From positions 124,001-188,000 of IMG/VR virus record IMGVR_UViG_3300042566_001512: 64,000 nucleotides of DNA; one strand, written 5' to 3'. Under the pieces are notes generated by a model. That model was not told the origin of the DNA and made no database searches. It saw only the letters and a list, made by a program, of their open reading frames with translations. Shown here one piece after another: positions 10,555 through 28,005 of the stretch. The translations under genes were made by a program, and so were the position numbers. Within the stretch, counting starts at the first letter, position 1, and the number at the start of each line of letters is the position of its first letter.

Positions 10555-11340
10555 TTAGTTAGCGTTAGATGGATAACTTCTTCCGACTCCCCAGATTATC
10601 CTCACGCCTGCCAGGCCCGAGGTATTTACGCTGGAGTCCAAGCTATATCCACCATCCCCGCCGCCACACGTTCCGCCTCTGCCATTACTGTCTTGGCCTT
10701 TGCTGCCACCGGACCCTCCTTCGCCTCCGTTGCCGGGATATGATCCGGCGGATCCAGAAGTTCCAGTACCAAGTAATCCAACACCCCCTCCGCCGCCGGC
10801 ACGGGTTGATCCGGTATTACCTGCGCCGCCGCCTCCAGCACCGCCAGTTCCAGAGAGTGGCGCAGTGGAGTTATTCCAGCTGCCTCCTCTGCCTCCGTTT
10901 CCGGAATAGCCGGCAGCGCCACCGCCACCCCCTCTTCCGGAGTTTTCGTCCGCAAGAGCATCTCCTGCTCCACCGGCTCCGCCGCTGTACTTTACTTGAC
11001 CCACTCCATTGGCTGCGCTACCGCCGGCGCCACCGAAGGCACCGTCTACTCCTTCTTCCGCTTTTAGTAACCAGGTTCCGGCCCTTAGTATTCCCGCTGT
11101 GGCTTGGTAGTCTATCGTAAGTTCTTCCCCCGGGGTAACCGGTATCGCGTTGGAGTATGAAAGTGCTCCGCCTCCGGCGCCCTGGTTTCGGTTTTGGCTA
11201 TAGCCACCGGCACCTACTGCTACTGCGCATATTTCTGTAACGCCCGCGGGAACAATCCACGTATCTGTGCTCCAGCCAGTCCACTGAATTTGACCTCTTG
11301 GCGGTGACGCCAATGCAGATTTTAAAATATTAGATAACAT
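10555..11340 (-). CDS. Glycine-rich tail fibre/adhesin protein
   Basis: WIVPAGVTEICAVAVGAGG, many GGxGG runs, GVRIIWG..RSYP end; start taken at ATG 11340, which overlaps the upstream stop (TAATG). Confidence 0.65.
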   Translation of the reverse strand: MLSNILKSALASPPRGQIQWTGWSTDTWIVPAGVTEICAVAVGAGGYSQNRNQGAGGGALSYSNAIPVTPGEELTIDYQATAGILRAGTWLLKAEEGVDGAFGGAGGSAANGVGQVKYSGGAGGAGDALADENSGRGGGGGAAGYSGNGGRGGSWNNSTAPLSGTGGAGGGGAGNTGSTRAGGGGGVGLLGTGTSGSAGSYPGNGGEGGSGGSKGQDSNGRGGTCGGGDGGYSLDSSVNTSGLAGVRIIWGVGRSYPSNAN

Positions 11341-12482
11341 TAAGCATTCCCCACTCTTGCGCCAAATATTGTAGATCCTACTTTCCACAAAACTATAACG
11401 GTGTACCCTGTAGTATTAAGCGTGGGCGCCGAGCCGGAGTCCGTTTTCCATGTAACGGAAAGGCTGGCCCAGTTTATTGTTCTAGAAGAACCGTCGTCCA
11501 CTAAAAGTGTAATGGACTGACCCTCTGACCATGATCCAGATGTAGGTGTGCTACTAGCGGTCAGTGCCCATGTTTGAATTGACCCGTTTTTTGGTTCTAG
11601 TGTAGGCGTGGTTCCGGTTACCGCAAACACTTCTTCAGTATACCCATTCGTAAGCGATAACGCTTCAACGGTCTTATTTTGTAATGTTTGAGCGCCCGCT
11701 ATAGTTACGGTGGTGTTTATTGGCGCATAAGTTACGGCCGCTGCCACTGCTGTAAGATATCCAGAGTCGTTGGTAAAGGCACTAACGTTAGAAGGCTGAG
11801 TGTAACTAAACACGCCCGTTAATGGGTTATAGCTTAGACTGCCGCTGGCGTTTACGGAGGCTCTGACTCTTGCTTGCGTGTAATAAAGATTAACAGAACC
11901 CTCTGCCACGGAGTCGGTAGATCCCGGAGCCGCACTTATTTCAGCGTAAGAGGAACCGCCCCATCTGTATGTTTTACCATTATCTATGGTAATGTATATT
12001 TTACCCGATTCACCAGTGACAGGCAGATTTGAAAAGCTCGATGCCTCTATAACGTCATCAACGTAGGAAGGCAGTTGTGAAGTGGCTATTTTACCGGTTG
12101 AATCTAGTCCGGCATATCCGTTTGCGGAATTTCTATTGAGTACGTTTTCTGGAGTAAAACCAAGTGCCGACGTCACGTCGATCGACGTGAGGGTGACGGG
12201 TCCGGTTCTGGTGTTGAAGCTGGCGACTCCTATTTCTACGGCTCCCCCGTCTTGAATCTGTAGGTTACCCGCTCCCAGTAGCGACGCTCCGTTGATGGTT
12301 TTAATGTTGACACCGGGCTGGAGCTCTTGCTGATACTCTGGGTGTGGGTTAACCGATTCCTCGTGAGCAGTTATGGCAGTTTCTATAAGGTTAGTTATAT
12401 TACTTACATCCACGCCTTTTACTTTTAGGCCATCTACGAAGTTAAACGGTAACCCGTTTCTTGTTCTTAGGTTATTACTCAT
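11340..12482 (-). CDS. Tail fibre protein 1 (shared N-terminal LPFxFVDGL motif)
   Basis: 380 aa; NIKTINGASLLG, VASFNTRTGPVTL, QLPSYVDDVIE and STDSVAEGSVNLYYT fibre segments. Confidence 0.7.
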   Translation of the reverse strand: MSNNLRTRNGLPFNFVDGLKVKGVDVSNITNLIETAITAHEESVNPHPEYQQELQPGVNIKTINGASLLGAGNLQIQDGGAVEIGVASFNTRTGPVTLTSIDVTSALGFTPENVLNRNSANGYAGLDSTGKIATSQLPSYVDDVIEASSFSNLPVTGESGKIYITIDNGKTYRWGGSSYAEISAAPGSTDSVAEGSVNLYYTQARVRASVNASGSLSYNPLTGVFSYTQPSNVSAFTNDSGYLTAVAAAVTYAPINTTVTIAGAQTLQNKTVEALSLTNGYTEEVFAVTGTTPTLEPKNGSIQTWALTASSTPTSGSWSEGQSITLLVDDGSSRTINWASLSVTWKTDSGSAPTLNTTGYTVIVLWKVGSTIFGARVGNA

Positions 12483-12558
12483 TACTTAATCCTTCTTATA
12501 TAAAGGGGGCTTTTACAGTTCACAATATGCTCAAAGCTTAAATCTGGGTTTTACTACG

Positions 12559-12594
12559 CATATAGTCCCTGGAACACGTTCCAGGGACTATATG
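12559..12594. terminator. 17-bp hairpin (CATA...TATG family)
   Basis: CATATAGTCCCTGGAAC-AC-GTTCCAGGGACTATATG. Confidence 0.7.
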
Positions 12595-12618
12595 ACACAC
12601 TAACAATATAATTTAAAA

Positions 12619-13422
12619 TTAGCTGTATTGCTGTATCAGAGCTATAGCTTGCGTTTCACTAAGAGACTGGGCATTTATCATTGCCTGCAAGCTTCCCAGG
12701 CCTTGGTCGGTTCTTGCTATGGCGCTGTTTACGTTTTGTAATAGACCCTCGGTGAGTGCCAGTGCTTGTATGGCTGAGTTGTTTGCGTTTGTTGCAGCCG
12801 CTGCACTAAGAACCGTTACGGTGTTGTCGGGGTCGTCTAAAAGCTGCCTTAGTCCGGATATACTGGTATCGATGTACGACAGTATCTCCATGTGGGCTAT
12901 TTCATCGCCCAAAAGTATAGCAGTTTTTAGTCTCTCTAACTCTGCTACCATGTATTCAAAACCTATAACGTCCCCTACTCTGTGCAGGTGATTACTAGGT
13001 TCAAAAGACGTGGGGCGATCTAGTATATTGGGCCAAGACACGGGTCTTTGATCCGATAACAGATTATCAAGAAGTAGCTTTATTGCCTCAAATGTTCTCT
13101 CATACCCGCCACCAAGGGCTTGGTAGTTTAGTCGTACAGAATTACTTACAGAAGGGTTAGTAATTACAATTACTGTACAGATTTCTTTACCGGACTGGGC
13201 AGTTGGTATTCCCACCACATCCAGACACTTATAGTGAATGTCTCTTACAAGTAAAGAGTTAGTTGTGGCGTCATAGACTTCAAGAGACTGTGTGTAATAG
13301 GGTCCATAAATAGGCGCTAAAGAACGATAATTCTTTACAGCTAATTCGTGCACCTCTCCTAGTACTCTGTTATCGGGGTTTGTTCCGGTTAAATCTAAAT
13401 TAAATCTAATAGGGTTTGCCAT
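12619..13422 (-). CDS. Baseplate/fibre-anchor paralog (DxTG...N family)
   Basis: DLTGTNPDNRV, PIYGPYY, YQALGG and WPNILDRP..F.P..HLH segments shared with neighbours. Confidence 0.65.
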   Translation of the reverse strand: MANPIRFNLDLTGTNPDNRVLGEVHELAVKNYRSLAPIYGPYYTQSLEVYDATTNSLLVRDIHYKCLDVVGIPTAQSGKEICTVIVITNPSVSNSVRLNYQALGGGYERTFEAIKLLLDNLLSDQRPVSWPNILDRPTSFEPSNHLHRVGDVIGFEYMVAELERLKTAILLGDEIAHMEILSYIDTSISGLRQLLDDPDNTVTVLSAAAATNANNSAIQALALTEGLLQNVNSAIARTDQGLGSLQAMINAQSLSETQAIALIQQYS

Positions 13423-13467
13423 TTTGTTTTATTTCTCCGTTTACCACTATACTACCGTGGCGAATTG

Positions 13468-15531
13468 TCAATTGGATACCGCGTTAATCATTCTAACGAG
13501 ACTTATGTTGTCTATGCCAAAGCTATTTCCTGTCGTATCTGTGGCGTGGTTCAGTAGCTCCAGTTTAGTGGTCGGATTGTTTCCCGTAGTGAACGAGTAA
13601 ATAATGTCCCTTTGTATGGATTTATTAGGATTTAGTACCACCGTCTTAGAGTGAAGAACGCCGTCTACCATTAGTCGTATGTCTGGTAAATTGACTGTTC
13701 CGTATACTAAAGAGTATTTTAATTGATATCTAGTATTTGGATCTAGTGGTATTTCCTGAGACCAGAAACTAATATTTGGACTTTCGCTAAAAACGAACAA
13801 ATATTTGCCGTCATCTAGTTTAATATCGTTGGGGTTAATTATACCTGGCTCCGTATATGTGTTTTGGCTATCCAGTGTAGCTATAGGGATGTCAGTTACT
13901 TTAATCTTGTCTCTACTAGTGAAGTCTAGTCTAGGAGACATTACGGTAGCAAAATTAGAAGCGCCCTCACTAAAACTTGGGTTGGTTATATAGTTAACGT
14001 CGACCTGGTATCTTAATCTGATATAGGTCAATATCGAGTGTATTTCTACTTTAGACAGTTCTCTTTGGTACACTAGCAAAAGATGCAGTTCTGCATTTTG
14101 ATCAACGCTGGGATGACCCAAATACTGCATTTCTTGACCGATGCCTTCTATATCTAGAGTGGACTGATCTATGTTGTTAGGTGCCTTATAGAAATTAAAA
14201 GGCGTGTTGCTAAGGCACATGCAATCTTTTTCTCTGGACCCTACTTTCATCACAGTTACATGTGCTCCACCGTCAAAAAACTTTGAGGTTTTGCCCAGGT
14301 AAGATATTTCATTATTGTTTATATCGCTGTACTGTGCAGCTATTCCGTTTAAAACATCTATTTCTAGTTTCTTAACATCGCTAGACAAGATGGGTAATTT
14401 AATTTGATTAGAAGAGTCCCTCGGGGCGGTGACTGCGATTATGGTCTGGCCCTTTGAGAAGTTAAGAAAGAGCCCGCCTTGCTTGTTTATCCATTGATTG
14501 GTACTGAACTTAACCGCGTTTTTGCTAGGAAAAACATAACTAGGTCCATAGCTAGGAGGGTTTTGCTGGTCTGCACTAAATGTAGTTTGGGCAGATCCGG
14601 TACTCGCCCATGTTAAAGTATTTGGGTCGTAGTTATCGGAATCTAGTCTGACGTAAAGGCCTCCCATAATACTGGGAACGTCTATCAAAGTACCGTTTTC
14701 CTCAAACTCTCGTATGCATAAAAGATTGGCGACGTTAGCTAGCTTATCGTTTGCGTTCAGGTGCTTATAATCAAGTAACTTTTGTTCCAGTAGATCCGTT
14801 TTATTACGAAGTTCTTGAAATTTAATATCTATGGAATTTAATTCCTCAGACAAAATTACAAGTGTATCTTCTGCCGATTTGTTAAGAGCGGTTATTAGAT
14901 CTACTTTTTGCAGTGGCTCTGTATTATACTTTTCAAAGAAAGAGTCTTGTTCAGTGAAGTACTCGTTTACTATGGACAGATGTATAGCTCTATCTCCAGT
15001 GGTAACTGCGACCTTTACCAGCCTCAAAGCGTCTGTTACGTATTCTAATCCATATATATCCAAAGCATCTTGGAGGTGCGGTGCTGGAGGATAACCTTTG
15101 GGTTTATTGATTATTTCGTTCCAGCTTATGTTTGAGTTATTATCATCTATGGCAGCTATTGCCGCACCTAGTAATTCCCTGTTTACTTGATCGTGACCAC
15201 CAAGGGCCTGGTAACTTATAGATAAAGTAGAAGAGGCAACAGACGGGAATAACAAAATAACAGTACAAACAGAGCCACCTACTAATTTTGTCACCTTGTG
15301 AAGCATCTCTGTGGCTATATAGTGCTGTTCTTTTTCCAGCAACGTGGCTTCCTGGGTATTCTCGTCGATAGAATAGACTCTTAAGCTATCGCTATAAAAA
15401 GCACCATATTTTGGTAAAATTAGCTTAATAGGCAAAAGTGACTGTACTTGATGAATTTCTTCTATTATTAGGTTATCTTGGGACTGACCAGTCCTGTCTA
15501 GCTCTAAATAAAAATTAGGTGCAGTGGCCAT
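13468..15531 (-). CDS. Baseplate/fibre-anchor paralog with C-terminal lectin/CBM-like domains
   Basis: Family N-terminus (DRTGQSQDN, YQALGG, WNEIINKP), coiled coil, LamG-like part (LLVYQRELS), CBM-like end (ITNPSFSEG, FGIDNISL). Confidence 0.6.
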   Translation of the reverse strand: MATAPNFYLELDRTGQSQDNLIIEEIHQVQSLLPIKLILPKYGAFYSDSLRVYSIDENTQEATLLEKEQHYIATEMLHKVTKLVGGSVCTVILLFPSVASSTLSISYQALGGHDQVNRELLGAAIAAIDDNNSNISWNEIINKPKGYPPAPHLQDALDIYGLEYVTDALRLVKVAVTTGDRAIHLSIVNEYFTEQDSFFEKYNTEPLQKVDLITALNKSAEDTLVILSEELNSIDIKFQELRNKTDLLEQKLLDYKHLNANDKLANVANLLCIREFEENGTLIDVPSIMGGLYVRLDSDNYDPNTLTWASTGSAQTTFSADQQNPPSYGPSYVFPSKNAVKFSTNQWINKQGGLFLNFSKGQTIIAVTAPRDSSNQIKLPILSSDVKKLEIDVLNGIAAQYSDINNNEISYLGKTSKFFDGGAHVTVMKVGSREKDCMCLSNTPFNFYKAPNNIDQSTLDIEGIGQEMQYLGHPSVDQNAELHLLLVYQRELSKVEIHSILTYIRLRYQVDVNYITNPSFSEGASNFATVMSPRLDFTSRDKIKVTDIPIATLDSQNTYTEPGIINPNDIKLDDGKYLFVFSESPNISFWSQEIPLDPNTRYQLKYSLVYGTVNLPDIRLMVDGVLHSKTVVLNPNKSIQRDIIYSFTTGNNPTTKLELLNHATDTTGNSFGIDNISLVRMINAVSN

Positions 15532-15612
15532 ATTAGGTAACTTCCTTTATATATGTTAATTTTTTACCCAAAAATAGGATAGATCACATCATGTTTAAAA
15601 CAATCAATGGCA

Positions 15613-15641
15613 TAATAGGAGGACAAAAAGTCCTCCTATTA
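15613..15641. terminator. 12-bp hairpin preceded by GGCA
   Basis: TAATAGGAGGAC-AAAAA-GTCCTCCTATTA. Confidence 0.6.
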
Positions 15642-15658
15642 ATTAGTGATTACTATAG

Positions 15659-17173
15659 TCAATAACCCAGAGCTTGTCTTAGAACGAATGGCGGTAGGCC
15701 AGTGTTATGAAAGTGTGGCATAAATTCTAAAACGTCCCCTGCCACTATTGGATAATTTACAGATACCTGATTAACTGTGACTGTGAAATCTGTACCGTTG
15801 AACAAGACCAATGCATCGTTTAGTCTCAAACAGTATCCGTCAGAATCTATGGGCGTACTTATCAAATCGAATATTTCATTTTGGTCAGTTACTGTGAATT
15901 TTTGATATAGTCTATTTGATGGATTGTTTATCTTTATTGGCTTAGTTTGTATTACTATATCTACTACTTCACCTGCCAACAAAGGTTCTAAGAAAGTAAT
16001 TTCTGTATCGTTTATTTGGTAATTTACGGTGTTTATAAGTTCAGAAAACTTATTTATTACCACTCTAATACAGGTACCCATCAGTGGGCTGGAGTTTAGG
16101 CTATACGTCACTTGGTCAGCCAAAGCGCTAAACGAATAAACCTGGTAAGCGTCTTTATCCTCGTGAAGCCATCTTCCCATGGGAGGATTAGATACTGGCT
16201 TTATTACGGTATATCCGTTATCCGCTTCCGTATTAGTAGTGGACCAATAATAAGTACTAGAAGAGGAGTCACCTGGCGCAAGCTTACCTAGCAAGAGTAC
16301 GGCATGTACCTTGTTTGAATCTGTGCTTGGCACGTGTAGCTGCCTTAGTTCATTTATATTCTTTACCCGTAGTACGGCCTGATCAAGCGTTTGGTTAGTG
16401 GCGGTTCCTATAAGGGAGGCCCCTAGTTTAGTAGCCAGCGCAAGCATAGCGTCTGCAGCGTTGCCTATGGACTCCAATACCACTTGTATAGCCAGCCTCA
16501 CGCCTCTTGGGGTCATGTACTTGGTTATGCTAGTACCGTCAATAGATTCCGCATCGGTTGCCACTCCAAAGTTTTGTACATTACCAAGACCCAGCATATT
16601 CTTCGTGGGTATCAGCGAAGGGTCTACTACGGGACCTTGTACTGGCTTATCTGCAATAGCCTGTGCAACGTCTTCAACGGACTGAACCACGTCCGACATT
16701 CCCACTAGGTCTGTCAAGTTCCACTCGTGATCGACTACCGGAAACAAAGTAGGAACGTTGGCCACCTGCTCCCAGCTAGTCACCCTGGGGTTTCTTGTCA
16801 TGTCTGACAATATTTCGTTTATTTGAACTGGATCCAAAGTCCACTGTCCACCAACGGTGTTGTATGCTAGAGTTATAACTCCGGCAAGCTGTAGATTTAA
16901 TAAAGATATCCCACCATAAATCGGCTTAGCGCAACTTCTACTAGCTGCTATGAACTGAAAGCTAAAATGAAAGTCTATCCCCTCGACTAGAAATCTAATA
17001 TTGTTATCTATGTCTTTATATGAAATAGTGCAGCCATCTGCAAAAAATGGAGCGTAGGTTGGCACTATGAAATGGTAATTCCTACCAGACACCGCGGTGA
17101 TTATTTGCTGTTCGCCAGTTATTCTGTTAGCGGGAAGAGTACCCGTAGGATCAAATTCGTAAAAGGTCGTCAT
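15659..17173 (-). CDS. Baseplate/fibre-anchor paralog with tailspike-head-like domain and two C-terminal repeats
   Basis: FDPTGTLPANRI N-terminus; LGLGNVQNF fibre motif; GASLIG...DNGYTVIKP...GRW segment. Confidence 0.65.
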   Translation of the reverse strand: MTTFYEFDPTGTLPANRITGEQQIITAVSGRNYHFIVPTYAPFFADGCTISYKDIDNNIRFLVEGIDFHFSFQFIAASRSCAKPIYGGISLLNLQLAGVITLAYNTVGGQWTLDPVQINEILSDMTRNPRVTSWEQVANVPTLFPVVDHEWNLTDLVGMSDVVQSVEDVAQAIADKPVQGPVVDPSLIPTKNMLGLGNVQNFGVATDAESIDGTSITKYMTPRGVRLAIQVVLESIGNAADAMLALATKLGASLIGTATNQTLDQAVLRVKNINELRQLHVPSTDSNKVHAVLLLGKLAPGDSSSSTYYWSTTNTEADNGYTVIKPVSNPPMGRWLHEDKDAYQVYSFSALADQVTYSLNSSPLMGTCIRVVINKFSELINTVNYQINDTEITFLEPLLAGEVVDIVIQTKPIKINNPSNRLYQKFTVTDQNEIFDLISTPIDSDGYCLRLNDALVLFNGTDFTVTVNQVSVNYPIVAGDVLEFMPHFHNTGLPPFVLRQALGY

Positions 17174-17316
17174 GGTGCTTTGTCCTTATCAAAGGCTATC
17201 AATGTTGTGAATTTTTTGATACTGTTAATCAAAAACAAATATCGTTAACAGGGCTATACCATTGCTTTTGGGGGGTATAGTGAACAAGGTTAACACATCA
17301 ACGGAGTAAATGAAAT

Positions 17317-18552
17317 ATGTATACAGCGGTTAATGCGGTTGGCGTTAAAAAGGGAGTCAACCAAAGATGGCAAACTATAGATATAACTAGCATTACTATA
17401 GCTAACCTCTACGATATCTATCGTAGGGTCTTTTTGACTTTACAGACAGGAACTCCTGCAGTAACTGTTTATCTAGATATGGACGCGGTTAGGTCAGAAT
17501 ACTCCACCTACGACGACACTATAACTCAGTGGTTAATTGATCTAATGGACGCTAGTTTGCCAACCTCATCAACCGTGCCGCCTATACAAACCAGGACTGC
17601 CAGGTTCATGGACGCGTTTAGAGCAGGGTACTCCATTAAACCTTATAATTCAATATACGGCGATAATGTTAGCGAGTCAGATAAATTAGACGCGCTTTTA
17701 ACCAGAAGTTCTCCAGTGTCTAACTACCCAGTTTTTCACAGCACAACCTTAGTTAGTGTAAACGGGTTTTACCATAGAACAGACACAAATGGCACAAATG
17801 GAATAGTTGTATATAAAGCGGCAGAGAGCGCAAAAAAGTCTAATCAAAACCAGATGGGGCTATTGACGTTCGAGGGAATGTGTTCCCTTGAAATTGTGCC
17901 ATTTACCCAGTCGATGATATACAAGCAACAAGAAAACGTTCCTTTATCCGAAGCAGCATATATAAATACCGGATTAGATCTTACCAATAAAAACGTATTA
18001 TTTATAATTGGCGGGTACATGCACTTTGTTGGTGATCTTGTAACCCAGGTAGGCATTAATACTTTTAAAATAGATTTTAGTAACTACCCCATATTTGATA
18101 GATTCTACGAAATGAAGGCTCACCTCAATGTATCCTCGTTTGATCTATCTAGCACCGAAGTAAACCCTAATCAGATATCCGTAGAAGAACTTCAAACGGA
18201 CGAAAACATAAAAGCTTTAATTTTAATGAATCAGTCTTTTATGGTGGTTTTAAATACGGGGCATCTTTATACCGATAAAAACTATGTAAGAGCAACTGGC
18301 TATCCGGGTAGCTACATAGCGTATACGACACCAAACAAAACTCTGGTTACCGGTTTAGGTAGACATAATGAATATTGGTATCGACAAGAAGATGACCAGT
18401 ACATTTTAACAGTGTACGACAACGCAGTATCTAACAGAATATACAATACGATTAATCCGTATTTTGAAAACTCTATAGGCGACAGTGAACTTCCTACGGA
18501 TCCTGTTTACCTATCCGGGGCGTATTTTTTAGAAATAGGAAGAGACGAATGA
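17317..18552 (+). CDS. Conserved virion structural protein (phiKZ-like baseplate region)
   Basis: 411 aa; LVSVNGFYHRT and FIIGGYMH segments; GGAG RBS. Confidence 0.55.
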   Translation: MYTAVNAVGVKKGVNQRWQTIDITSITIANLYDIYRRVFLTLQTGTPAVTVYLDMDAVRSEYSTYDDTITQWLIDLMDASLPTSSTVPPIQTRTARFMDAFRAGYSIKPYNSIYGDNVSESDKLDALLTRSSPVSNYPVFHSTTLVSVNGFYHRTDTNGTNGIVVYKAAESAKKSNQNQMGLLTFEGMCSLEIVPFTQSMIYKQQENVPLSEAAYINTGLDLTNKNVLFIIGGYMHFVGDLVTQVGINTFKIDFSNYPIFDRFYEMKAHLNVSSFDLSSTEVNPNQISVEELQTDENIKALILMNQSFMVVLNTGHLYTDKNYVRATGYPGSYIAYTTPNKTLVTGLGRHNEYWYRQEDDQYILTVYDNAVSNRIYNTINPYFENSIGDSELPTDPVYLSGAYFLEIGRDE

Positions 18553-18638
18553 GCGCCCCGCTTTTCAAAAAACGATTTAAAAGAAGTTTAAGTTTCGGTT
18601 AATTTATAAAAAATTAAATCTTATACAAAGGGTTTATA

Positions 18639-18977
18639 ATGATCTACAAAATCATTTATACAAATAAATTTATCCCAAGCCGATTTGCGGCCAGATCTAT
18701 CGGTCCTTTAATATTGGTTAGACCGAAGTACACTGGCGACAAGGGGTTGATTGAGCACGAAAAAGTGCATGTAAAACAATATTGGCTTACTTTAGGATTA
18801 TTTGGAATACCTTATAACTTGTTTAAAAAGTTCAGGCTAATTTGCGAGGTGGCCGCCTACAAAGAGCAATTAAAACACTACGATACCGACAAGACGCAGC
18901 TATTTGCTTACCACCTAGCTACTCTTTATAATTTGGACATTACTCAAGAAAAAGCGGTTGAGCTACTTTCTAAATAA
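18639..18977 (+). CDS. Small HExxH zinc-metallopeptidase-like protein
   Basis: LIEHEKVHVKQY followed by EVAAY (third ligand). Confidence 0.6.
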   Translation: MIYKIIYTNKFIPSRFAARSIGPLILVRPKYTGDKGLIEHEKVHVKQYWLTLGLFGIPYNLFKKFRLICEVAAYKEQLKHYDTDKTQLFAYHLATLYNLDITQEKAVELLSK

Positions 18978-18988
18978 AGCAATCAAGC

Positions 18989-19024
18989 AGCATAATACCC
19001 AGGATCTTTCCTGGGTATTATGCT
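18989..19024. terminator. 16-bp hairpin (CATA...TATG family)
   Basis: AGCATAATACCCAGGA-TCTT-TCCTGGGTATTATGCT. Confidence 0.7.
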
Positions 19025-19132
19025 CTGTGTAAAAATGTATTAGTAATAATCTTTTCGGTCATGTTGTGAAATATTTAATACTTCCGGCAAAAAAAGCTAA
19101 CCGCTTAATAGATTAATAAGGATAAATAAAAC

Positions 19133-20536: not shown

Positions 20537-20555
20537 TGACCTATCAATAAAAAGC

Positions 20556-20586
20556 ATAAATAGGAGGGTATTGCCCTCCTATTTAT
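20556..20586. terminator. 13-bp hairpin (CATA family)
   Basis: ATAAATAGGAGGG-TATTG-CCCTCCTATTTAT. Confidence 0.65.
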
Positions 20587-20652
20587 TTTATGGCTTCTAC
20601 AACGTAGATATTAATATATAGCATTTAAAGTTTTTAATAAAAGGAATAAGTC

Positions 20653-21651
20653 GTGGAAACATCTAATAAAATAAGATCACTAAATAGAATACCGTTTGAT
20701 TTCGTTGACGGTCTTTTGGTCAAAGGAATAGGAATAGACGATTTGGTGGACACGGCGACGGAAGCCGCATCTTCTGCAGCCGCAAGTGCTGCAAGTGCTG
20801 CACAGTCAGCATACCTGGCCGGTATAAATGCTACAGCTGAAGCCGCTGCAGCCGCAGCCGATGCTGTGTATGATCAACTTGAAGACATTAAGGTGCAGAC
20901 GGAGGTAGCCAGAGACGGCGCAGTAATTTCGGCCAACTCCGCTTCAGATTATTCCAATAGTGCCCAAGGCAGCGCGTTTACGGCTTCTCAACAGGCGCAA
21001 CAAGCTGAGAATAGTGCAGTAGCGGCGAGCGCCCTGGCGGCGGCGGCAGCCGGTAGTGCTTCGACTGCTAGCGGCTACAGTGAAACGGCCCTTCAGGCAG
21101 CAATTACCGCCACAAACGAGGCACAGTCGGCGGAACAATCGGCCGCCGTAGCTACCACTAAAGCACAAGAGGCAGTCCTTGCAGCAAGTGACCCGGGTGT
21201 AGTAGCCGTAGGAGCCGACTTGTTAGGTGCAGACACAATAGGTACGGTTGCTGCCGTTTCGCAGGAAGTTGTAAAACTTGCCGGATTGGAAGAAGAAATA
21301 GTATCGCTGGCATCGGGGGTTGTTCCTACCAGAGTCGTCACAATTGCAAATGGTAACTCTATTTCTATAAACGCCGATTTGACAGACGTGGCAGTGCAAT
21401 CGAATAGTCAAGTGGACGGCACACTTACTATAAACGCACCCACAGGAACACCTGGCGATTCTCAAAGATTAATAATTAGATTAAAAACCGACAATATTCA
21501 AAACCTAGCATGGAACGGCGTGTTTCAGGGATCTTCCGTCATGCCTCTTCCCTCGGTATCCTCCGGCTTTGGATTTATTGACTATTTTGGTTTTTTCTAC
21601 GACAGCACTACTAGTAAATGGCAGCTTGTTTCTTTTGTTGGAGGTTTTTAA
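20653..21651 (+). CDS. Tail fibre protein 2 (shared N-terminal motif, Ala-rich coiled-coil stalk)
   Basis: NKIRSLNRIPFDFVDGL start, long SAAxA heptad region, C-terminal LTINAPTGTP...WQLV domain. Confidence 0.7.
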   Translation: METSNKIRSLNRIPFDFVDGLLVKGIGIDDLVDTATEAASSAAASAASAAQSAYLAGINATAEAAAAAADAVYDQLEDIKVQTEVARDGAVISANSASDYSNSAQGSAFTASQQAQQAENSAVAASALAAAAAGSASTASGYSETALQAAITATNEAQSAEQSAAVATTKAQEAVLAASDPGVVAVGADLLGADTIGTVAAVSQEVVKLAGLEEEIVSLASGVVPTRVVTIANGNSISINADLTDVAVQSNSQVDGTLTINAPTGTPGDSQRLIIRLKTDNIQNLAWNGVFQGSSVMPLPSVSSGFGFIDYFGFFYDSTTSKWQLVSFVGGF

Positions 21652-21879
21652 ATGATTACAATAGATTTCGAAAGAACGGACGGCAACTACACTTTCAGAG
21701 ATGCGATTATACTTCCAGACGACCACGCGTTAACAGAAGAACAAATAGAAGAAATTAAAGATCGGCGCTGGTCAGAATGGTTAAAAGTATTGACGTCGCC
21801 GCCTCCTGCTCTGGACCAAGGCGCGATTGACTTTTTAGACCCAAATAACCAGGTCGATAAAGAGGTAAACAATGGCTGA
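21652..21879 (+). CDS. Small fibre-associated protein
   Basis: 75 aa with GGAGG RBS, coupled between fibre and adhesin genes. Confidence 0.6.
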   Translation: MITIDFERTDGNYTFRDAIILPDDHALTEEQIEEIKDRRWSEWLKVLTSPPPALDQGAIDFLDPNNQVDKEVNNG

Positions 21880-23647
21880 TCGTTATTGGGTAGGCGGTGG
21901 CGGCACATGGAGCTCCACTATTACGACTAACTGGAGCGAAACTAGCGGTGGAGCGGGGGGCGCTAGCGCGCCGACTAGTTTAGACGATGTCTATTTTGAT
22001 GCAAACAGTGACGCGGGAAGTCCTTTTACGGTAACTATATCTACTGGCGCAGTTAATAGAAATATTAAAGTTACGTCATTAGATCAAACAATGACTTTTG
22101 GCGGTACAGGCACTTGGTCTGTTCATGGCGACTTAGAATTTACTACCGGCGGTCTCTTGGTTAATTCTCACCAAGGAAGCATGAATTTTAATGGCACCGC
22201 CGGAGTAACTAACTACATAAAGACTAACGGAGTTGTGCTGGTGCCCGGTGGCGGGGCCAGTAATTCGCCCTTTAATATTAGATTGAATATAAATTCTGGT
22301 AAATGGGTATTAGGTTCCGCGCTTTCGATAACACCGCAAAGTTATATGGGTGGTTTTTATGTTAATGGCGGAATATTAGACACCTCGGGATATAATTTAA
22401 CAGGGGTGGGATTACAAATCACGGGATCGGCGTCAAAAGAGATATATTTAAGAAACTCCACCGTAACATTAACGTCAAGTTTCTATAATCCTTCTACTGC
22501 CGGATCTTTGTTGTTTGACGCCGGTACGTCTACTCTTAATTTTGGTGTTCTTGGCTCCATCGGCACCAGCGGACAATCTCTTAACTTTTATAATGTAAAT
22601 TTCGGCACTACATCTAGGGGTTCTTCTTCAATCGGTGGCGCGGCCGTATCTTTTAATAAGTTGACTATTGCGGATTCTGTATATAACAGCCCGGTTGTTC
22701 TTTCTGGTAATATAACAACAAACGAATTAGACATAAAGTCATATTGTACAATTATAAGTGACAGTCTTGGGACCCAAAGAACACTTACAATTAATTCCGC
22801 GTTTACTGCAAGCAGTAACCCGATATTGTTTAGGGACGTAAATGTCGCCGGGCCACTGGCTCCTATATCGGGTGCTAATTTTGGCGATGCAGGTAACAAT
22901 TCCGGTATAACGTTTCGCCCAGCAAAAACTCTTTACTCCAGATCTTCTTCGCTTTTTTTATATACATCGTTTACTTGGTCAGACACTAGTAACGGAGTAG
23001 CTAATCATTATCTTTTGCCACAGGATACCGGCATAATAGATAACAATAGTCAAAGCAATATAGCGTGGCCATATTCTGCGGCCTATTTCTTTGGTACGCT
23101 AAACGCCGAAACTAGAACCACTCCGTTGACTTTAAGTATAAACATCAGCGCCGCCACGCAGTCTTTATATTACGCTACATTTGTTGGTGATTTTAAACTA
23201 TCGAGCTCCGTTACTCTTACTACCCCAAGTGGCTCTGGAATAGGTCAAATACTATCATTCCAAGGTAACAAAAATCAAAAAATAAAGTTAAGCGGACAGC
23301 AAATAAATACAATTAGTATAAGTAAAGTTAATTCTTCTTTAGATTTAGAGAGCGATCTCAATATAGTTAATACCAGAATTTTTGATATATCCTCAGGGAC
23401 CTTTAACACTAATAACTATAACTTGACCTGTGGTTTCTTTTCATCTAGTAATACCTCCATTCGCAACATAAATTTAGGTACTAGTAAAATTACCCTGACT
23501 GGCACCGGGGTAGTTTGGAACACCGCCACTGCTACAAATCTAGTGCTTTCGGCGCAAAATTCTACAATCGCACTAAAAAACTCAGGAGATCAGAGTTTTG
23601 CCGGCGGTGGATTAAACTACGGTAAATTGTCAGTGGAGAACCCATAA
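21872..23647 (+). CDS. Ser/Thr/Gly-rich beta-helical adhesin A
   Basis: MADRYWVGGGGTW...APTSLDDVYFDANS N-terminus; beta-solenoid-like composition. Confidence 0.65.
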   Translation: MADRYWVGGGGTWSSTITTNWSETSGGAGGASAPTSLDDVYFDANSDAGSPFTVTISTGAVNRNIKVTSLDQTMTFGGTGTWSVHGDLEFTTGGLLVNSHQGSMNFNGTAGVTNYIKTNGVVLVPGGGASNSPFNIRLNINSGKWVLGSALSITPQSYMGGFYVNGGILDTSGYNLTGVGLQITGSASKEIYLRNSTVTLTSSFYNPSTAGSLLFDAGTSTLNFGVLGSIGTSGQSLNFYNVNFGTTSRGSSSIGGAAVSFNKLTIADSVYNSPVVLSGNITTNELDIKSYCTIISDSLGTQRTLTINSAFTASSNPILFRDVNVAGPLAPISGANFGDAGNNSGITFRPAKTLYSRSSSLFLYTSFTWSDTSNGVANHYLLPQDTGIIDNNSQSNIAWPYSAAYFFGTLNAETRTTPLTLSINISAATQSLYYATFVGDFKLSSSVTLTTPSGSGIGQILSFQGNKNQKIKLSGQQINTISISKVNSSLDLESDLNIVNTRIFDISSGTFNTNNYNLTCGFFSSSNTSIRNINLGTSKITLTGTGVVWNTATATNLVLSAQNSTIALKNSGDQSFAGGGLNYGKLSVENP

Positions 23648-26600
23648 TGAAAACGGTAACGATCACTGGAGTAAATACATTTAAAGAAATATCGGACACT
23701 AATTGGAATTCCGATACTCTGACTATTGTTTTTCCAAACGCGACAACAAATATTGAGAAATGGACAGTGTATGGATCGGCGGCATATCCTGTTACTTTGT
23801 CTAGAACGGGTTCGTCGGGCTCTTTTACCCTGAACTACACGGGGACGAGCAACATATCTTCCGATTATATTAACGTATCTAACGGCGCTGGACTTCCTTC
23901 CAACACGTGGTATCTTGGGCCAAACAGTGTTAACGGCGTAAATACCTCTGGATTTATTTTTACGTATGGTGCAGTAAGGTATTGGGTGGGCGGCACCGGT
24001 ACGTGGGATCATCAAAGCGCAACAAATTGGGCATACCAAAGTGGCGGTTTCGCCGGGGCGCCGGCTCCCACTAATCTAGATGACGTGTATTTCGATAATA
24101 ATAGCAGCAGCGGAGCTTTTACAGTAACCCTCGACAGCGGTTTTGTTGGAACAGGAAGCATAAGCGGAACCACACTGACTATTACCGCCGTTACTAAGGG
24201 AACCTTGGCTGTAGGAAAAAACATCTATTATAATTTATCTAATGTTTTTGCCCCTGATGCGGACTTATCTAACATAACTATACAAAGTATACTAACCGGA
24301 ACCGGGGGGGTTGGTACGTACAGAATAAGCACTAGCTTTTCCAACGTGACAAGTAGAGCGATATATTCCGATATACCAAGATGTCGAGATCGCGCGTCGC
24401 CCACTACAAATAGTTTAAGTTTTGTTGGATCCTCTCCAATAATAATATCCGGAAGCATAGAGGATTCTTTTTCTGTAAATAGCGCTGGCTATTCGTCCGT
24501 AATCATTTTAAACTCCGGATATAATTGCCGACTGGGCGCAGCGGCTTCATTAGCACGATATTTTCTAACCGGTTCTAATAATAGAACTCTGATAAGTTCA
24601 TTAAGCGCCTCGATGGTGTTCGTATACTCTGGCGGATTTAATACAAGCAATTTAAGCGTCACACTAAGTAATTTTTTATCGGCTGGTGGATCCTTAACTA
24701 GAAACATAGATCTTACATATTCTGAAATATTTTTAAGAGACGTATATAACTATCTTAACATAGTGAGCTCGGCAAACTTAACATTTAGTTCTATAAATTC
24801 AACAATATATCTTAACTTCTACTCCGGACACGAAACGGCAGGATTTTTAACTAACAACCTGCAATACGGAAATATTATTTTTCGACCGGCACCGGCTGGA
24901 AGCTCGTATGCAATTGTATATTTTACTGGAAATCTATATTGCAGAAACCTAAACATTGAGTCCATTCAGGGTTCTACTAATGCACAAGTAAACGTATGTT
25001 TCAACAGCGGCGCTTCTTCCTCTTTGCCTGTTTACGTAAACGTTTCAGAGAAGTTTACACTTCGTGGGTCCTCCGCTCTGGCCAGAAAGACGTTAGTGGG
25101 GTCGTGTGGCGAACTCAGCGCAAGCTTTAATAAGCCATCAAAGATATACATTACAGCAAGCCAATACGACATAGATTTCGTAGATTTTAGAGACGCAGAA
25201 TTCACAAACACAGTAATATCTGGACAAAGCATTGGAAATCTTGGCAATAACGCCGGCATTCAATTTACGCCACCCAAGACCGTTTATTGGAAAAACACCT
25301 CTACTTCTTACGCCGTTTGGAAGAGTGCATCTTACGCGTTAACCGAAGACGGCGTGGGTTCTTTTGATAACTATCCATTGGCACAAGACACTGTAATTTT
25401 TACAGATGCAGGAATAGGGGCAAGTGCGTCCATTGGGTTTTTAAATCCATATGACGGACTTGCCGGCAACATCGACATGTCCAGATTAACAAAACCCCTG
25501 ACCTTTAACTGGACGGCATTTACTGGCGGTGGGGGATATAAGGGCATATACGGCGACTTTATTTTATCTAACAGCGTAACAATCAATAGCAACACTCCAA
25601 TCGCCTTCTATAATAGAAAAAATTCTATTATAGATACCAAAGGAAAGATCGCTAATGGATATTTCTTTAACAGCGAGAATTGCACCTTAACCATTCAAAG
25701 CCCATTAGTTACATCAGGAGCAGTGACTTTGGTTCGTGGTAATTTATCAATGCTTGCTGATATTACATGTGACACCTTCTCTAGTTCGGCGGTGTTCTTG
25801 AGAAGTGTTGATTTTGGTAGCAACTTTATTAATGTTACAGGATTTAACAAAGATGTAGTTTCAAGTACGTCATCTGGCACCGGCTGGTCTTGTAGTGGAA
25901 CAAAGATGTTTGTCCTACAGGGATCCCCCACTAGCGGAATAAGAAACGTTGGTGGAATAGCATCATCAAATGCCACACAGGATCAAGTGTATTCTTTCAA
26001 AGTAGCAGGTGGTTCTGATACTGTTAGAACGATTAATTTAAGTAGATTTAATAGTATCATTTTTGAAGACGAATTTACAGGATCTAATGGTATTCTGTGG
26101 AATTATATTTTTGGAGACTTAAGGTTTTCTGGTAACATGACTATAACTCCAACTCCAAGTGGAAGTGCGCATGATCTCTATTTTGTTGGATCAAAACAAC
26201 AAAACTTAACAACTAACGGCGTTAATGTACCGAGGACATGTATTATTGCAAAAGACACGGGATCTAACGTTGTTCTTCAAGATGACGTTAATTTTATTCA
26301 GCATCTTAACAATAGCCAAAAGGTTCAGCTGCAATCTGGAACCTTAAATTTAAATGGCCGTAAGCTGACTACGGTTTCGTTCTCTTCAGAAACGTCAAGT
26401 CTGAAAAGCGTTAATTTTGCAAACGGTTCTTTGGTTGTGTCCGGGTCCTCTTTTTCTAATACTTCCACGGCCTTAACTATAACGGGCCCAGGAACCATTA
26501 GCATGACGAGTAACGCGGCTAAAACGTTTGCAGGTGGAGGGTATCAGAGCTACCCTACGCTTAATCAGGGGGGAGCAGGGACTCTTACAATAACCGGAGC

Positions 26601-26961
26601 CAACGGGTTTCAGGCGATAACGGACACGGATTCGCAGTCCACTATAGTGTTTCCTTCTAACTCCACCACAAGAGTAAACGACTTTAGGCTAAGGGGCGAA
26701 CCCGGTAAAATTTTGTCACTACAATCCTCGGTATCTGGGCAGCGGGCTACGCTTACATACTCCGGGATATCGAGCGGCCCAATATTGACTAGCTACGCAT
26801 CTATTAAAGACATCTCGGTTACTGGGGCGCAGTGGAATTCTCCAGTAAATTACGGATGTGTTGACGCGGGTAATAACGTAGGTTGGAACTTTGGCAACGT
26901 TTCTCTTAAAAGAGATTTCTCGCCGTTTATGGCAGTTCCTATACCTATTGGTGCAAATTAA
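23647..26961 (+). CDS. Ser/Thr/Gly-rich beta-helical adhesin B
   Basis: 1104 aa; internal RYWVGGTGTW...APTNLDDVYFDNNS; ends DAGNNVGWNF; paralog of adhesin A. Confidence 0.65.
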   Translation: MKTVTITGVNTFKEISDTNWNSDTLTIVFPNATTNIEKWTVYGSAAYPVTLSRTGSSGSFTLNYTGTSNISSDYINVSNGAGLPSNTWYLGPNSVNGVNTSGFIFTYGAVRYWVGGTGTWDHQSATNWAYQSGGFAGAPAPTNLDDVYFDNNSSSGAFTVTLDSGFVGTGSISGTTLTITAVTKGTLAVGKNIYYNLSNVFAPDADLSNITIQSILTGTGGVGTYRISTSFSNVTSRAIYSDIPRCRDRASPTTNSLSFVGSSPIIISGSIEDSFSVNSAGYSSVIILNSGYNCRLGAAASLARYFLTGSNNRTLISSLSASMVFVYSGGFNTSNLSVTLSNFLSAGGSLTRNIDLTYSEIFLRDVYNYLNIVSSANLTFSSINSTIYLNFYSGHETAGFLTNNLQYGNIIFRPAPAGSSYAIVYFTGNLYCRNLNIESIQGSTNAQVNVCFNSGASSSLPVYVNVSEKFTLRGSSALARKTLVGSCGELSASFNKPSKIYITASQYDIDFVDFRDAEFTNTVISGQSIGNLGNNAGIQFTPPKTVYWKNTSTSYAVWKSASYALTEDGVGSFDNYPLAQDTVIFTDAGIGASASIGFLNPYDGLAGNIDMSRLTKPLTFNWTAFTGGGGYKGIYGDFILSNSVTINSNTPIAFYNRKNSIIDTKGKIANGYFFNSENCTLTIQSPLVTSGAVTLVRGNLSMLADITCDTFSSSAVFLRSVDFGSNFINVTGFNKDVVSSTSSGTGWSCSGTKMFVLQGSPTSGIRNVGGIASSNATQDQVYSFKVAGGSDTVRTINLSRFNSIIFEDEFTGSNGILWNYIFGDLRFSGNMTITPTPSGSAHDLYFVGSKQQNLTTNGVNVPRTCIIAKDTGSNVVLQDDVNFIQHLNNSQKVQLQSGTLNLNGRKLTTVSFSSETSSLKSVNFANGSLVVSGSSFSNTSTALTITGPGTISMTSNAAKTFAGGGYQSYPTLNQGGAGTLTITGANGFQAITDTDSQSTIVFPSNSTTRVNDFRLRGEPGKILSLQSSVSGQRATLTYSGISSGPILTSYASIKDISVTGAQWNSPVNYGCVDAGNNVGWNFGNVSLKRDFSPFMAVPIPIGAN

Positions 26962-27001
26962 CTATTATAAATTAATTTACTAATTTTTTTTAATTATATA
27001 C

Positions 27002-27037
27002 AGCATAAATGGGAGGGCGAGCCCTCCCATTTATGCT
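27002..27037. terminator. 17-bp hairpin (CATA...TATG family)
   Basis: AGCATAAATGGGAGGGC-GA-GCCCTCCCATTTATGCT. Confidence 0.7.
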
Positions 27038-27101
27038 ATGGTCGCTATAAAGAATAAAATTATTTTAATGGTTTTCAATTATTTTAAACTAAGGAACACT
27101 A

Positions 27102-27962
27102 ATGGCTACACCTAATAAGTTAAGATCACTAAACAGATTACCGTTTGATTTTGTGGACGGGTTAAAGATAAAAGGAACCGACGTAACGGATTTAATGTTT
27201 TTATTTTCCGATCAGGGTGCTTCTCTCGTTGGAAAGAACGGTGGCGGTTCTGTTCAAGACAAACTCGATGAAATAGACGGCCAAGAAAATACAGTAACTG
27301 GGCAATTTTCTTTATCTATATCTGGTTATAGAAACGAAATAACGGGCACTGCTACCGCCTGTTCGGGTAGAAACAACGATGTGTCCGGGAACGATTGTTT
27401 TGTAGCAGGAGACGGCAATACTTCAAGTGGAAATTGGACAACCGCATTCGGTTATAAAAACACAATATCGCACGATCACAGTCATGTAAGAGGCGGCTAC
27501 AACGGCATTACTAGTTGGAGTGGACAAGATGTACGCTGGTCGTACCGTAACTTAGAAGCCCCACTTACCCCAGCTCGTCAACATTTTTACCTGGACTTGA
27601 GCGACAACACTGCCACCACCGCAGCATCGCAGTTAAAGCTACTAAATGGGAGCGCGTTAATAGGCATTCCAGAGTTGAGTATTTGGAAATGTAAACTGCA
27701 AGTGGTCGCAATGAGTTCTGGAATAAAGGGCGCGTCTTTCGATATATCTTTCACTATACAAAGAGGCGCTAGTTCCACAGTTTTCTTGGGCACTATTGAC
27801 ACCGTTAGTAAATTAGATTCCGGCTTAGGCACGGCCTCAAACGCAGCATCGGCATCTGTTGCATTGTCTGGAAACAATTTAGTTGTAAATATACAGCCAA
27901 GACTGGACACTGCGCTTTCTATAAAGTGGGCCGGAACGCTTGAGGTTTTGGAAGTCAGGTGA
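27102..27962 (+). CDS. Tail fibre/spike protein 3 (shared N-terminal motif)
   Basis: NKLRSLNRLPFDFVDGL start, GASLVG motif, short G-x-x-N (YadA-head-like) repeats. Confidence 0.65.
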   Translation: MATPNKLRSLNRLPFDFVDGLKIKGTDVTDLMFLFSDQGASLVGKNGGGSVQDKLDEIDGQENTVTGQFSLSISGYRNEITGTATACSGRNNDVSGNDCFVAGDGNTSSGNWTTAFGYKNTISHDHSHVRGGYNGITSWSGQDVRWSYRNLEAPLTPARQHFYLDLSDNTATTAASQLKLLNGSALIGIPELSIWKCKLQVVAMSSGIKGASFDISFTIQRGASSTVFLGTIDTVSKLDSGLGTASNAASASVALSGNNLVVNIQPRLDTALSIKWAGTLEVLEVR

Positions 27963-27966
27963 CATT

Positions 27967-28005
27967 ATACGACATAAATGGGGGAGACCCCCATTTATGT
28001 CGTAT
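27967..28005. terminator. 18-bp hairpin between convergent genes (CATA...TATG family)
   Basis: ATACGACATAAATGGGGG-AGA-CCCCCATTTATGTCGTAT. Confidence 0.72.

Follow-up and report, generated by a model that had tools for sequence, protein, structure and literature searches.

The stretch of DNA analyzed here (the window) comprises 64,000 nucleotides, positions 124,001 to 188,000 of the 208,807-base record IMGVR_UViG_3300042566_001512, and contains a tail-fiber locus of an uncultured freshwater phiKZ-like jumbo phage. The assignment to the phiKZ-like (chimallivirus-type) phages rests on split multisubunit RNA polymerase genes and phiKZ-type virion and baseplate genes, with matches to phrog_2986 (a piece of the RNAP beta subunit) and to phrog_3004, phrog_3293 and phrog_3216 (virion and baseplate proteins), while the nearest cultured phages are FLC9, Xoo-sp14, RTH11, RP12 and phiKZ-like phages. 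Four open reading frames (ORFs) of the locus match the N-domain family of the phiKZ gp131-type fiber-base protein (phrog_2163, E 8e-33 to 6e-58), align with each other and hit phiKZ-like phages by tblastn; as in that family, these clustered paralogs, here termed hubs, share a ~180-residue N-terminal domain and vary in their C-terminal parts. The 267-aa minimal hub (12619-13422, minus strand) consists of the N-domain and a helical tail, whereas the 687-aa hub (13468-15531, minus strand) combines a gp131-like N-domain with a large C-terminal domain. The 467-aa hub (19133-20536, plus strand) has a gp131-like N-domain (residues 1-145), a linker with helix, an alpha/beta domain and two beta-sandwiches (295-375 and 380-452), and the 504-aa hub (15659-17173, minus strand) has the same C-terminal two-sandwich architecture. 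The hub cluster is divided by a conserved 411-aa virion protein (phrog_3337; 17317-18552, plus strand).

Among these hubs lie three fiber genes, referred to as P0001, P0002 and P0003, that begin with the same peptide of ~28 residues. P0001 (11340-12482, minus strand, 380 aa) carries a subtype-B peptide (MSNNLRTRNGLPFNFVDGLKVKGVDV), encoded at about 12399-12482, followed by a widespread fiber segment (residues 116-185) and a distal knob. P0002 (20653-21651, plus strand, 332 aa) starts with GTG, read as M in the database record P0006, and its subtype-A peptide, encoded at 20653-20736, is followed by a long Ala-rich helical stalk and a ~130-aa C-terminal domain; this protein has no relatives in cultured phages. 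P0003 (27102-27962, plus strand, 286 aa) also carries a subtype-A peptide, encoded at 27102-27185 and followed by a beta-roll (PF21300), and its C-terminal part is ~40% identical to tail-fiber C-termini of Ralstonia phages with ~40-66-kb genomes. None of the three tagged ORFs matches phrog_2163 or the hub N-domain profile. The rest of the P0002 unit (21652-26961, plus strand) contains a 75-aa ORF (21652-21879) and two Gly/Ser/Thr/Asn-rich repetitive proteins of 591 and 1104 aa, with abutting or overlapping starts and no tag, for which a beta-helix is a guess from composition only. A glycine-rich 261-aa ORF (10555-11340, minus strand) has an ATG that overlaps the stop codon of P0001 by one base.

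The observation of the earlier note, that three otherwise unrelated fibers share an N-terminal peptide and diverge right afterwards, is confirmed; the likeness covers the first ~28-30 residues. In the alignment, 13 columns of the first 31 residues are invariant (N5, R8, N11, P14, F15, F17, V18, D19, G20, L21, K24, G25 and L31), and pairwise BLASTP of the first 32 residues gives E-values of 2e-13, 5e-11 and 3e-8; after residue 32, by contrast, the best E-values are 0.03-0.5, so that nothing significant remains. A search of the whole record with residues 1-40 of P0003 finds exactly these three places (E 9e-24, 1e-10 and 1e-8), which is far beyond chance. Within the 24-codon core, 6-9 conserved codons per pair differ synonymously and nucleotide identity is 65-75%; the likeness is therefore kept at the protein level, and selection acts on the peptide.

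The earlier note also stated that each gene heads its own hairpin-bounded unit, and these units are real. Hairpins of the ATAAATRG..CYATTTAT family, followed by TATG, lie upstream of P0002 (20556-20586) and of P0003 (27005-27034), and one of the same family lies downstream of P0003 (27974-27998), where it is shared with the convergent PAAR gene; a further hairpin marks the end of the P0001 unit (10090-10119). Moreover, a hairpin with a 16-bp stem ending in TATG lies at about 12559-12594 (minus strand; z -4.7), between the 267-aa hub gene and P0001. However, the same hairpin-plus-TATG element also precedes two of the hub genes (19133-20536 and 13468-15531), and it is thus a recurring transcription unit of the locus rather than a mark of the tagged genes.

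A profile of the peptide, searched against 1.84 billion representative proteins, gave 115 protein clusters at E<=1e-3. In 113 of these the match starts at residue 1-8, the proteins range from 41 to 2193 aa, and the peptide was found at or within a few residues of the called N-terminus and never inside a protein. The consensus is M-[AS]-x-S-N-x-[LI]-R-[TA]-[RL]-[ND]-[RG]-L-P-[FY]-[ND]-F-[VEQ]-D-G-[LI]-[KR]-[VI]-x-G-[VI]-D-[VI], in which P14, F17, G20 and G25 are kept in 108-113 of 113-114 sequences. Behind the peptide, very different receptor-binding modules are found, including pectate-lyase/beta-helix tailspikes with a Peptidase_S74 chaperone, FG-GAP propellers, a GDSL esterase and a beta-roll, and the 84 members of 200 aa or more fall into 77 groups by their distal 60%. 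In an AF2 model of a subtype-B N-terminus, residues 1-40 have pLDDT values of 41-48, while the sandwich that follows has 83-89.

Thirteen loci were examined, namely the window and twelve fetched ones (handles beginning with L), and all are syntenic fiber loci of uncultured phiKZ-like jumbo phages in which the tagged genes sit among hub paralogs; the peptide occurs only inside the fiber locus of this one lineage. The same slot holds the same peptide on different fibers in different phages. For instance, a subtype-B tagged gene directly follows the 267-aa hub in the window, L011, L013, L016 and L018, and this slot holds proteins of 380, 102, 799, 853 and 835 aa. A tagged gene follows the 411-aa gene in L013, L016, L023 and L025, whereas the 267-type hub is absent from the distant loci L014, L017, L019 and L020, which still have a tagged fiber. 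A tagged gene directly follows the 467-type hub in 10 of 11 loci, with gaps of 18-150 nt, and the single tagged gene of the 98%-complete 270-kb genome G001 lies in exactly that position; these loci belong to related phages, however, and the adjacency is partly inherited synteny and not ten independent events. In L018 the hub is followed by another hub. In L022 the C-terminal tail of the hub is replaced by a fused fiber, yet a tagged gene still follows, and the tail itself therefore cannot be the socket. Peptide subtype is not tied to slot, since in L024 subtype B follows the 467 hub and subtype A follows the 504 hub. Residues 238-468 of the 467-type hub profile, its C-terminal module, have no match in five cultured relatives that also lack the peptide. 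A Pfam Gp10_C module was found only in L023, on both a hub and a tagged protein, and no Pfam hit was found on the window hubs.

The earlier note inferred a plug-in tag that lets imported fiber modules attach to the jumbo-phage baseplate, and this interpretation is supported as the best explanation of everything found, although the concept itself is already known from KP32, CBA120 and G7C. In this reading, held with moderate confidence, the peptide is a docking tag that holds separately encoded, exchangeable receptor-binding proteins on a tail-fiber base built from gp131-type paralogs, the tagged proteins lacking the N-domain of that family and carrying the peptide instead. The peptide is probably unfolded on its own and folds on its partner, perhaps as a small hairpin, as the alternating hydrophobic pattern PF-F-V-DG-L-V-G-V-V suggests. 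The likeliest socket is the C-terminal module of the 467-aa hub, which contains two Ig-like sandwiches of the kind found in CBA120 TSP4 XD domains and in T7-like fiber N-termini; the suggestion in the earlier note that this hub is a docking partner gains support from the gene adjacency and from the absence of the module in peptide-less relatives. The homologous module of the 504-aa hub may be a second socket, and each fiber root would then carry one or several side fibers in a branched arrangement. With three tagged fibers and one favored socket, the stoichiometry remains unexplained. A complex prediction of three copies of hub residues 200-467 with three copies of the peptide scored 0.00, which speaks neither for nor against docking. 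Because the tag is constant, new distal modules can, in this view, be recombined in behind it or moved between slots, thereby changing host range without touching the baseplate. What the analysis itself demonstrates is the existence of the peptide family, its strict N-terminal position, its modular distribution, its confinement to the fiber locus and its co-occurrence with the hub module, whereas binding, incorporation into virions, the identity of the socket, the stoichiometry and the branching are inferences.

Alternative explanations were weighed against this reading. It is possible, though unlikely, that the peptide is a docking tag whose socket is another conserved baseplate or fiber-root part, such as the 411-aa phrog_3337 protein, the hexamer of gp131-like N-domains with its helix bundle, or the 267-aa minimal hub. 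Tagged genes directly follow the 411-aa gene in four loci and the 267-aa hub in five, P0003 follows no hub at all, and the fused hub in L022 still has a tagged neighbor; the complex prediction with the 467 hub, itself uninformative, gave no signal. However, the 267-type hub is missing from four distant loci with a tagged fiber, and the 411-aa protein and the hub N-domains are also present in the five cultured relatives that lack the peptide, and hence do not co-vary with it, whereas the C-terminal module of the 467 hub does.

It is less likely still that the peptide is a folding, trimerization or chaperone-recognition tag, or a sorting signal, needed to make fibers that attach by other parts. 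The predicted disorder in a monomer would suit an assembly tag, and small ORFs that could be assembly factors follow some tagged genes (21652-21879 and 10555-11340). Nevertheless, trimerization or chaperone elements of fibers are normally C-terminal, and Peptidase_S74 is present at the C-terminus of the tagged protein P0059; the tagged proteins have no other conserved part that could attach them, P0002 for example going straight into a coiled stalk; 102-aa stub proteins consisting of the peptide and one sandwich (L011, P0083) make little sense for a folding tag; and the tag is confined to fiber-locus genes. The least likely alternative is that the conserved 5' ends are kept for a nucleic-acid reason, as homology arms for cassette recombination or as a shared translation-initiation or regulatory element, with no function for the peptide itself. 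Cassette exchange does happen right behind the tag, and P0002 and P0003 also share the upstream hairpin and TATG; on the other hand, 6-12 of 24 conserved codons per pair differ synonymously at a nucleotide identity of only 60-76%, conservation is residue-specific across 113 clusters, and the shared upstream element also precedes untagged hub genes.

A more speculative and rather unlikely extension is that peptide and socket form a lineage-wide standard connector for a whole clade of freshwater chimallivirus-like phages, in which paralogous sockets on the 467- and 504-type hubs, and perhaps others, accept any tagged protein, such that one genome can load three or more different receptor-binding proteins. 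These proteins might compete for the same sites and yield mixed virions as a form of host-range bet-hedging, while the ~100-aa stub proteins might cap unused sockets; the ancestral state under this reading, one hub with one giant tagged fiber, is still seen in G001, L014, L017 and L019.

Host recognition by phiKZ-like jumbo phages is poorly understood, and the recent phiKZ and Goslar virion structures could not resolve the distal fibers. A defined 28-residue tag that, on the reading preferred here, marks every detachable receptor-binding protein of one such lineage gives a simple sequence rule for finding these proteins in metagenomes (more than 110 clusters have already been found this way, and all ten looked up in the cluster tables were unnamed), points to the hub module that should carry them, and suggests a plug-and-play handle for retargeting jumbo phages, as has been done with the KP32 peptide. 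On the same reading, the peptide-plus-branching-hub solution arose, or was adopted, in a phage family far from the podophages and Ackermannviridae in which it is known.

In the phiKZ fiber base, the N-domains of gp131, gp133, gp134 and gp135 form a hetero-hexameric fiber root under the peripheral baseplate (PMC13250141), and the genes are clustered next to a conserved peripheral-baseplate gene, as they are here. However, phiKZ and the five cultured relatives searched have no tagged proteins and their hubs carry their own distal parts; the peptide-tagged layer is an addition in this uncultured lineage. The DUF7941 head-to-tail filaments of Goslar (PMC13742148) likewise involve a chimallivirus host-recognition protein family, whose members are predicted to link through a disordered segment of one protomer that adds a strand to a globular domain of the next, but this is a different family with no shared sequence, and it forms filaments and not tagged single fibers.

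In the branched tailspike complexes of Ackermannviridae (CBA120 TSP1-4) and of phage G7C (gp63.1 on gp66), several receptor-binding proteins hang on one another through N-terminal parts and Ig-like XD domains. The hub sandwich 295-375 and the subtype-B sandwich align with TSP4 residues 177-250 at Z 7.0-8.7 (~7 for the hub sandwiches), a middling match within the range of common-fold matches, without sequence homology, and the N-terminal anchors of CBA120 are folded domains of tens to hundreds of residues, not a 28-residue peptide. The idea of a constant attachment module with a variable distal part is shared with T7-like tail fibers (gp17) and with SP6/K1-5 adaptor systems, and the last hub domain (380-452) superposes on gp17-type N-domains of about a dozen podophages (Z 5.7-7.8, rmsd 1.8-4.1 A over 65-73 residues); this match, too, may reflect only a common fold, and here the domain sits at the C-terminus of the carrier instead of the N-terminus of the fiber, its role as a socket being a guess.

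[quoted passage not shown] 2019, PMC6872550; PMC13352976), in which a conserved peptide of RBP2 docks on the T4gp10-like branching domain of RBP1. In KP32, the first 29 residues of RBP2 are needed for this docking (PMC13352976), and tag-deleted fibers were shown to fold and trimerize normally in vitro but to fail to join particles. No sequence similarity to these peptides was found, since tblastn of both peptide subtypes against 50,697 phage records, which should include these phages and which stood in for a direct comparison with KP32, returned nothing or only chance-level hits (E=2, in Xanthomonas FoX phages). Furthermore, the presumed carriers here are paralogs of the phiKZ gp131 fiber-root protein on a contractile jumbo-phage baseplate and not a T7 gp17-type anchor protein, up to three or more tagged proteins occur per genome, and binding, which is shown for KP32, is only inferred here. 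In both cases, a short N-terminal peptide (~29 residues in the Klebsiella phages) is the only conserved part of otherwise variable secondary RBPs, it is followed directly by enzymatic modules, the tagged gene lies right after the gene of the carrier protein, and the distal modules are exchangeable.

The window, bases 124001-188000 of a 208,807-base virus record estimated to be 76% complete, carries a split multisubunit RNA polymerase gene piece together with phiKZ-type virion and baseplate genes. Its fiber-locus proteins find Burkholderia phage FLC9, Xanthomonas phages Xoo-sp14, RTH11 and LucasX, Ralstonia phages RP12 and RP31, and then phiKZ-like Pseudomonas phages, at 28-48% identity, whereas no cultured phage is close at the DNA level and near-identical DNA occurs in lake-water and freshwater metagenomes; the phage is therefore an uncultured freshwater phiKZ-like jumbo phage. 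When contigs of other metagenomes were aligned to the window, a second freshwater study was found to contain nearly the same hub and P0002 (the second of the three tagged fiber proteins), with no cassette break at the tag within the 6 kb compared.

The earlier note described three ORFs that share an N-terminal peptide, and this observation is confirmed, as both the ORFs and their N-termini are as described. The first 31 aligned columns contain 13 invariant residues, pairwise E-values for the first 32 residues range from 2e-13 to 3e-8, and nothing after residue 32 is significant; moreover, the whole 208.8-kb record has exactly these three copies. Within the 24-codon core, 6-9 conserved codons per window pair differ synonymously and nucleotide identity is 65-75%, and therefore selection acts on the peptide and the similarity is not a recent DNA copy. 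All three genes have an AAGGA ribosome-binding site and are preceded by a hairpin followed by TATG, which resembles the phiKZ late-promoter core. However, the same element precedes two untagged hub genes (19133 and 13468-15531), so that it is a recurring unit of the locus and not a mark of the tagged genes. A family of GC-rich hairpins with conserved ATAAATRG...CYATTTAT arms was found at 10090-10119, 20556-20586, 27005-27034, 27974-27998 and 43671-43702 (5 matches against 0.01 expected by chance), with further hairpins upstream of 19133 and 15531; they usually end in or are followed by TATG, and most likely they are combined terminator and late-promoter units.

The three tagged proteins are all plausible receptor-binding proteins and are unrelated to one another. 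P0001, the first of them, contains a fiber segment (residues 116-185) that is common in mycobacteriophage minor tail proteins and crAss-like tail fibers, followed by a distal knob found in other environmental phages. A tblastn search aligned P0001 residues 1-183 to the Carjivirus gp66 tail fiber, which gave a crAssphage lead; however, BLASTP shows that the match rests on the common segment 116-185 and lies inside gp66, so it is not the tag. A glycine-rich 261-aa ORF at 10555-11340 (-) has its ATG overlapping the TAA of P0001 by one base (TAATG) and is probably translationally coupled to the fiber, and a similar Gly-rich gene (PF21722, faint) lies in L023, one of the loci fetched for comparison. 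P0002 is an Ala-rich helical stalk with a small C-terminal domain and has no relatives among cultured phages. In the same operon, the first ~13 codons of the 591-aa gene (MADRYWVGGGGTW, 21872-21912) recur inside the 1104-aa gene at about 23985-24011, and they are matched by many otherwise unlike contigs in three other metagenomes at higher depth than the flanks, which looks like a second short conserved 5' module.

P0003 (27102-27962) has a beta-roll (PF21300), and its C-terminal ~210 residues are about 40% identical to the tail-fiber C-termini of 49 Ralstonia phages with ~40-66-kb genomes. This suggests module exchange across phage families. The window's 40% GC argues against a Ralstonia host. 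Convergent to P0003, at 28017-28277 (-), lies a small PAAR-motif gene (PF05488) next to a baseplate assembly gene (phrog_3216), and it is conserved at this place in locus L022. Further along the window, a 2288-aa ORF at 53769-60635 (-) matches phrog_3201 ('tail fiber protein') over its first ~1000 residues but carries no tag and no hub N-domain.

Among the neighbors, four ORFs share the ~180-residue N-domain of phrog_2163, namely those at 12619-13422(-), 13468-15531(-), 15659-17173(-) and 19133-20536(+), which are the 267-, 687-, 504- and 467-aa hub paralogs, respectively. This is the phiKZ gp131/133/134/135 family, whose N-domains form, in the 2026 phiKZ virion atlas, a hetero-hexameric fiber root with a six-helix bundle under peripheral baseplate protein gp130 (PMC13250141). 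The three tagged proteins lack this domain. In the cultured relatives Xoo-sp14, RTH11, RP12 and FLC1-1B, the hub proteins contain 3-8 tandem copies of the ~48-residue fiber repeat that occurs once in the window's 467-aa hub (profile positions 188-237).

The peptide is a family, although not every search revealed it. IMG/VR scans with the 3-sequence peptide alignment and with the conserved 411-aa virion protein of the locus found nothing, and a word-based protein search with the peptide found only the query itself; only a metagenome scan and an exhaustive profile search opened the family. The metagenome scan with the peptide found contig L011, a syntenic fiber locus with three more tagged ORFs between hub paralogs. 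A profile of the six peptides, searched against 1.84 billion representative proteins, then gave 115 hits at E<=1e-3, and in 113 of them the match begins at residue 1-8, with lengths from 41 to 2193 aa. The other two hits, P0078 and P0082 (of which only the sequence of P0078 was read), are internal repeats of unrelated long repeat proteins and were dropped. P14, F17, G20 and G25 are almost invariant, and two main subtypes (A and B) exist. The parts behind the tag include pectate-lyase/beta-helix tailspikes with a Peptidase_S74 chaperone, FG-GAP propellers, a GDSL esterase and Gp10_C, and the 84 members of 200 aa or more fall into 77 groups by their distal 60%. None of the ten clusters looked up carries a functional name, and all come from metagenome or environmental assemblies. 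The peptide is absent from five cultured relatives, from 50,697 phage records at any meaningful score, and from 185,579 bacterial and archaeal species genomes.

Beyond the window, twelve loci were fetched (L011, L013, L014, L016-L020 and L022-L025), and all are the same kind of fiber locus, several on contigs of 220-270 kb. Tagged genes sit at recurring slots, that is, after the 267-aa hub, after the 411-aa protein, after the 467-type hub and after the 504-type hub. For instance, the slot after the 267-aa hub holds proteins of 380 (window), 102, 799, 853 and 835 aa, all of which carry the same subtype-B peptide with different distal parts; this is cassette exchange behind a fixed tag. In one large subgroup, the conserved N-terminal module comprises the peptide, a linker and one Ig-like sandwich, and it is 78-98% identical among 15 of 17 sequences and 58-60% in two shorter stub proteins, across proteins that are otherwise under 50% identical. 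Stub proteins of ~100-127 aa made only of the peptide and one Ig-like sandwich (L011:7163-7471, P0083 and P0011) may be socket caps or remnants; in L011 the stub sits at the slot where relatives have 380-853-aa fibers. Also in L011, a 226-aa tagged ORF (L011:3204-3884) stops about 190 residues into a pectate-lyase-like module (DFGAKGDG...), just before the next hub gene, and is a decayed or truncated cassette. In L023, the T4 Gp10_C domain (PF21939, E 3e-24 and 5e-23) occurs on a hub paralog (L023:6050-7555) and on a 282-aa tagged protein (L023:9089-9937), respectively; the hub N-domain and the peptide are therefore alternative ways of mounting the same kind of distal module.

With respect to the putative socket, the 467-type hub has orthologs at 32-72% identity in all ten other loci whose contig reaches that position and, judged by gene length alone, at the edge of L013, while L011 ends before it. 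The gene directly downstream of it is a tagged gene in 10 of 11 loci, with gaps of 18-150 nt, L018 being the exception, although the loci are related and the adjacency is thus partly inherited. The 98%-complete genome G001 has a single tagged gene of 2177 aa, and it lies exactly there. Moreover, the hub profile matches the five peptide-less cultured relatives only over residues 2-237, and the C-terminal module, residues 238-468, is absent from them; that module and the peptide therefore co-occur. An AF2 model of the hub (mean pLDDT 78.7) shows the N-domain, a low-confidence linker with helix, an alpha/beta domain and two beta-sandwiches. The last predicted sandwich superposes on the N-terminal domain of T7-like fibers, and the one before it on Ig-like domains, including CBA120 TSP4 XD, at Z 7-8; however, these scores are middling and may reflect only a common fold. 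A profile search of PDB sequences with the hub gave only repeat artefacts ('Cake' designer proteins) and insignificant T4 gp12 matches. An AF2 model of a subtype-B N-terminus leaves residues 1-40 at pLDDT 41-48 next to a confident sandwich, which fits a segment that folds only on a partner.

P0149, the hub of L022, is a 467-type hub that is fused directly to its own fiber and has lost its C-terminal tail, and this 'Rosetta stone' arrangement seemed to place the joint at the hub's C-terminal tail; the idea was rejected because a tagged gene still follows it in L022. If this hub is the socket, the site would be lateral and not the tail, which would give a true branch. Similarly, the idea that subtype A or B marks the docking site fails in L024, where peptide subtype does not track slot. 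A complex prediction of hub residues 200-467 (3 copies) with P0002 residues 1-48 (3 copies), based on purpose-made alignments, returned no answer, with a score of 0.00, in a 3:3 design that was unlike the calibration of the method, and it is not used as evidence either way.

Taken together, the shared peptide itself is directly demonstrated by the sequences, and the earlier note's interpretation of it as a plug-in tag by which imported fiber modules attach to the jumbo-phage baseplate is supported by comparative evidence; docking as such is inferred, and the docking partner is probable but unproven. The peptide gives a practical handle on the receptor-binding repertoire of an uncultured jumbo-phage lineage.

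The principle is already established in other phages. In Klebsiella phage KP32, the first 29 residues of RBP2 are a conserved docking peptide for the T4gp10-like branching domain of RBP1; deleting either abolishes incorporation, and the peptide can carry a foreign enzyme domain (PMC13352976; model in PMC6872550). CBA120 and G7C use larger N-terminal domains, and neither the phiKZ nor the Goslar structure paper describes such a tag. The present system, as inferred here, works like these, but it is not a sequence relative, and its putative carriers are phiKZ gp131-type fiber-root paralogs on a contractile jumbo-phage baseplate.
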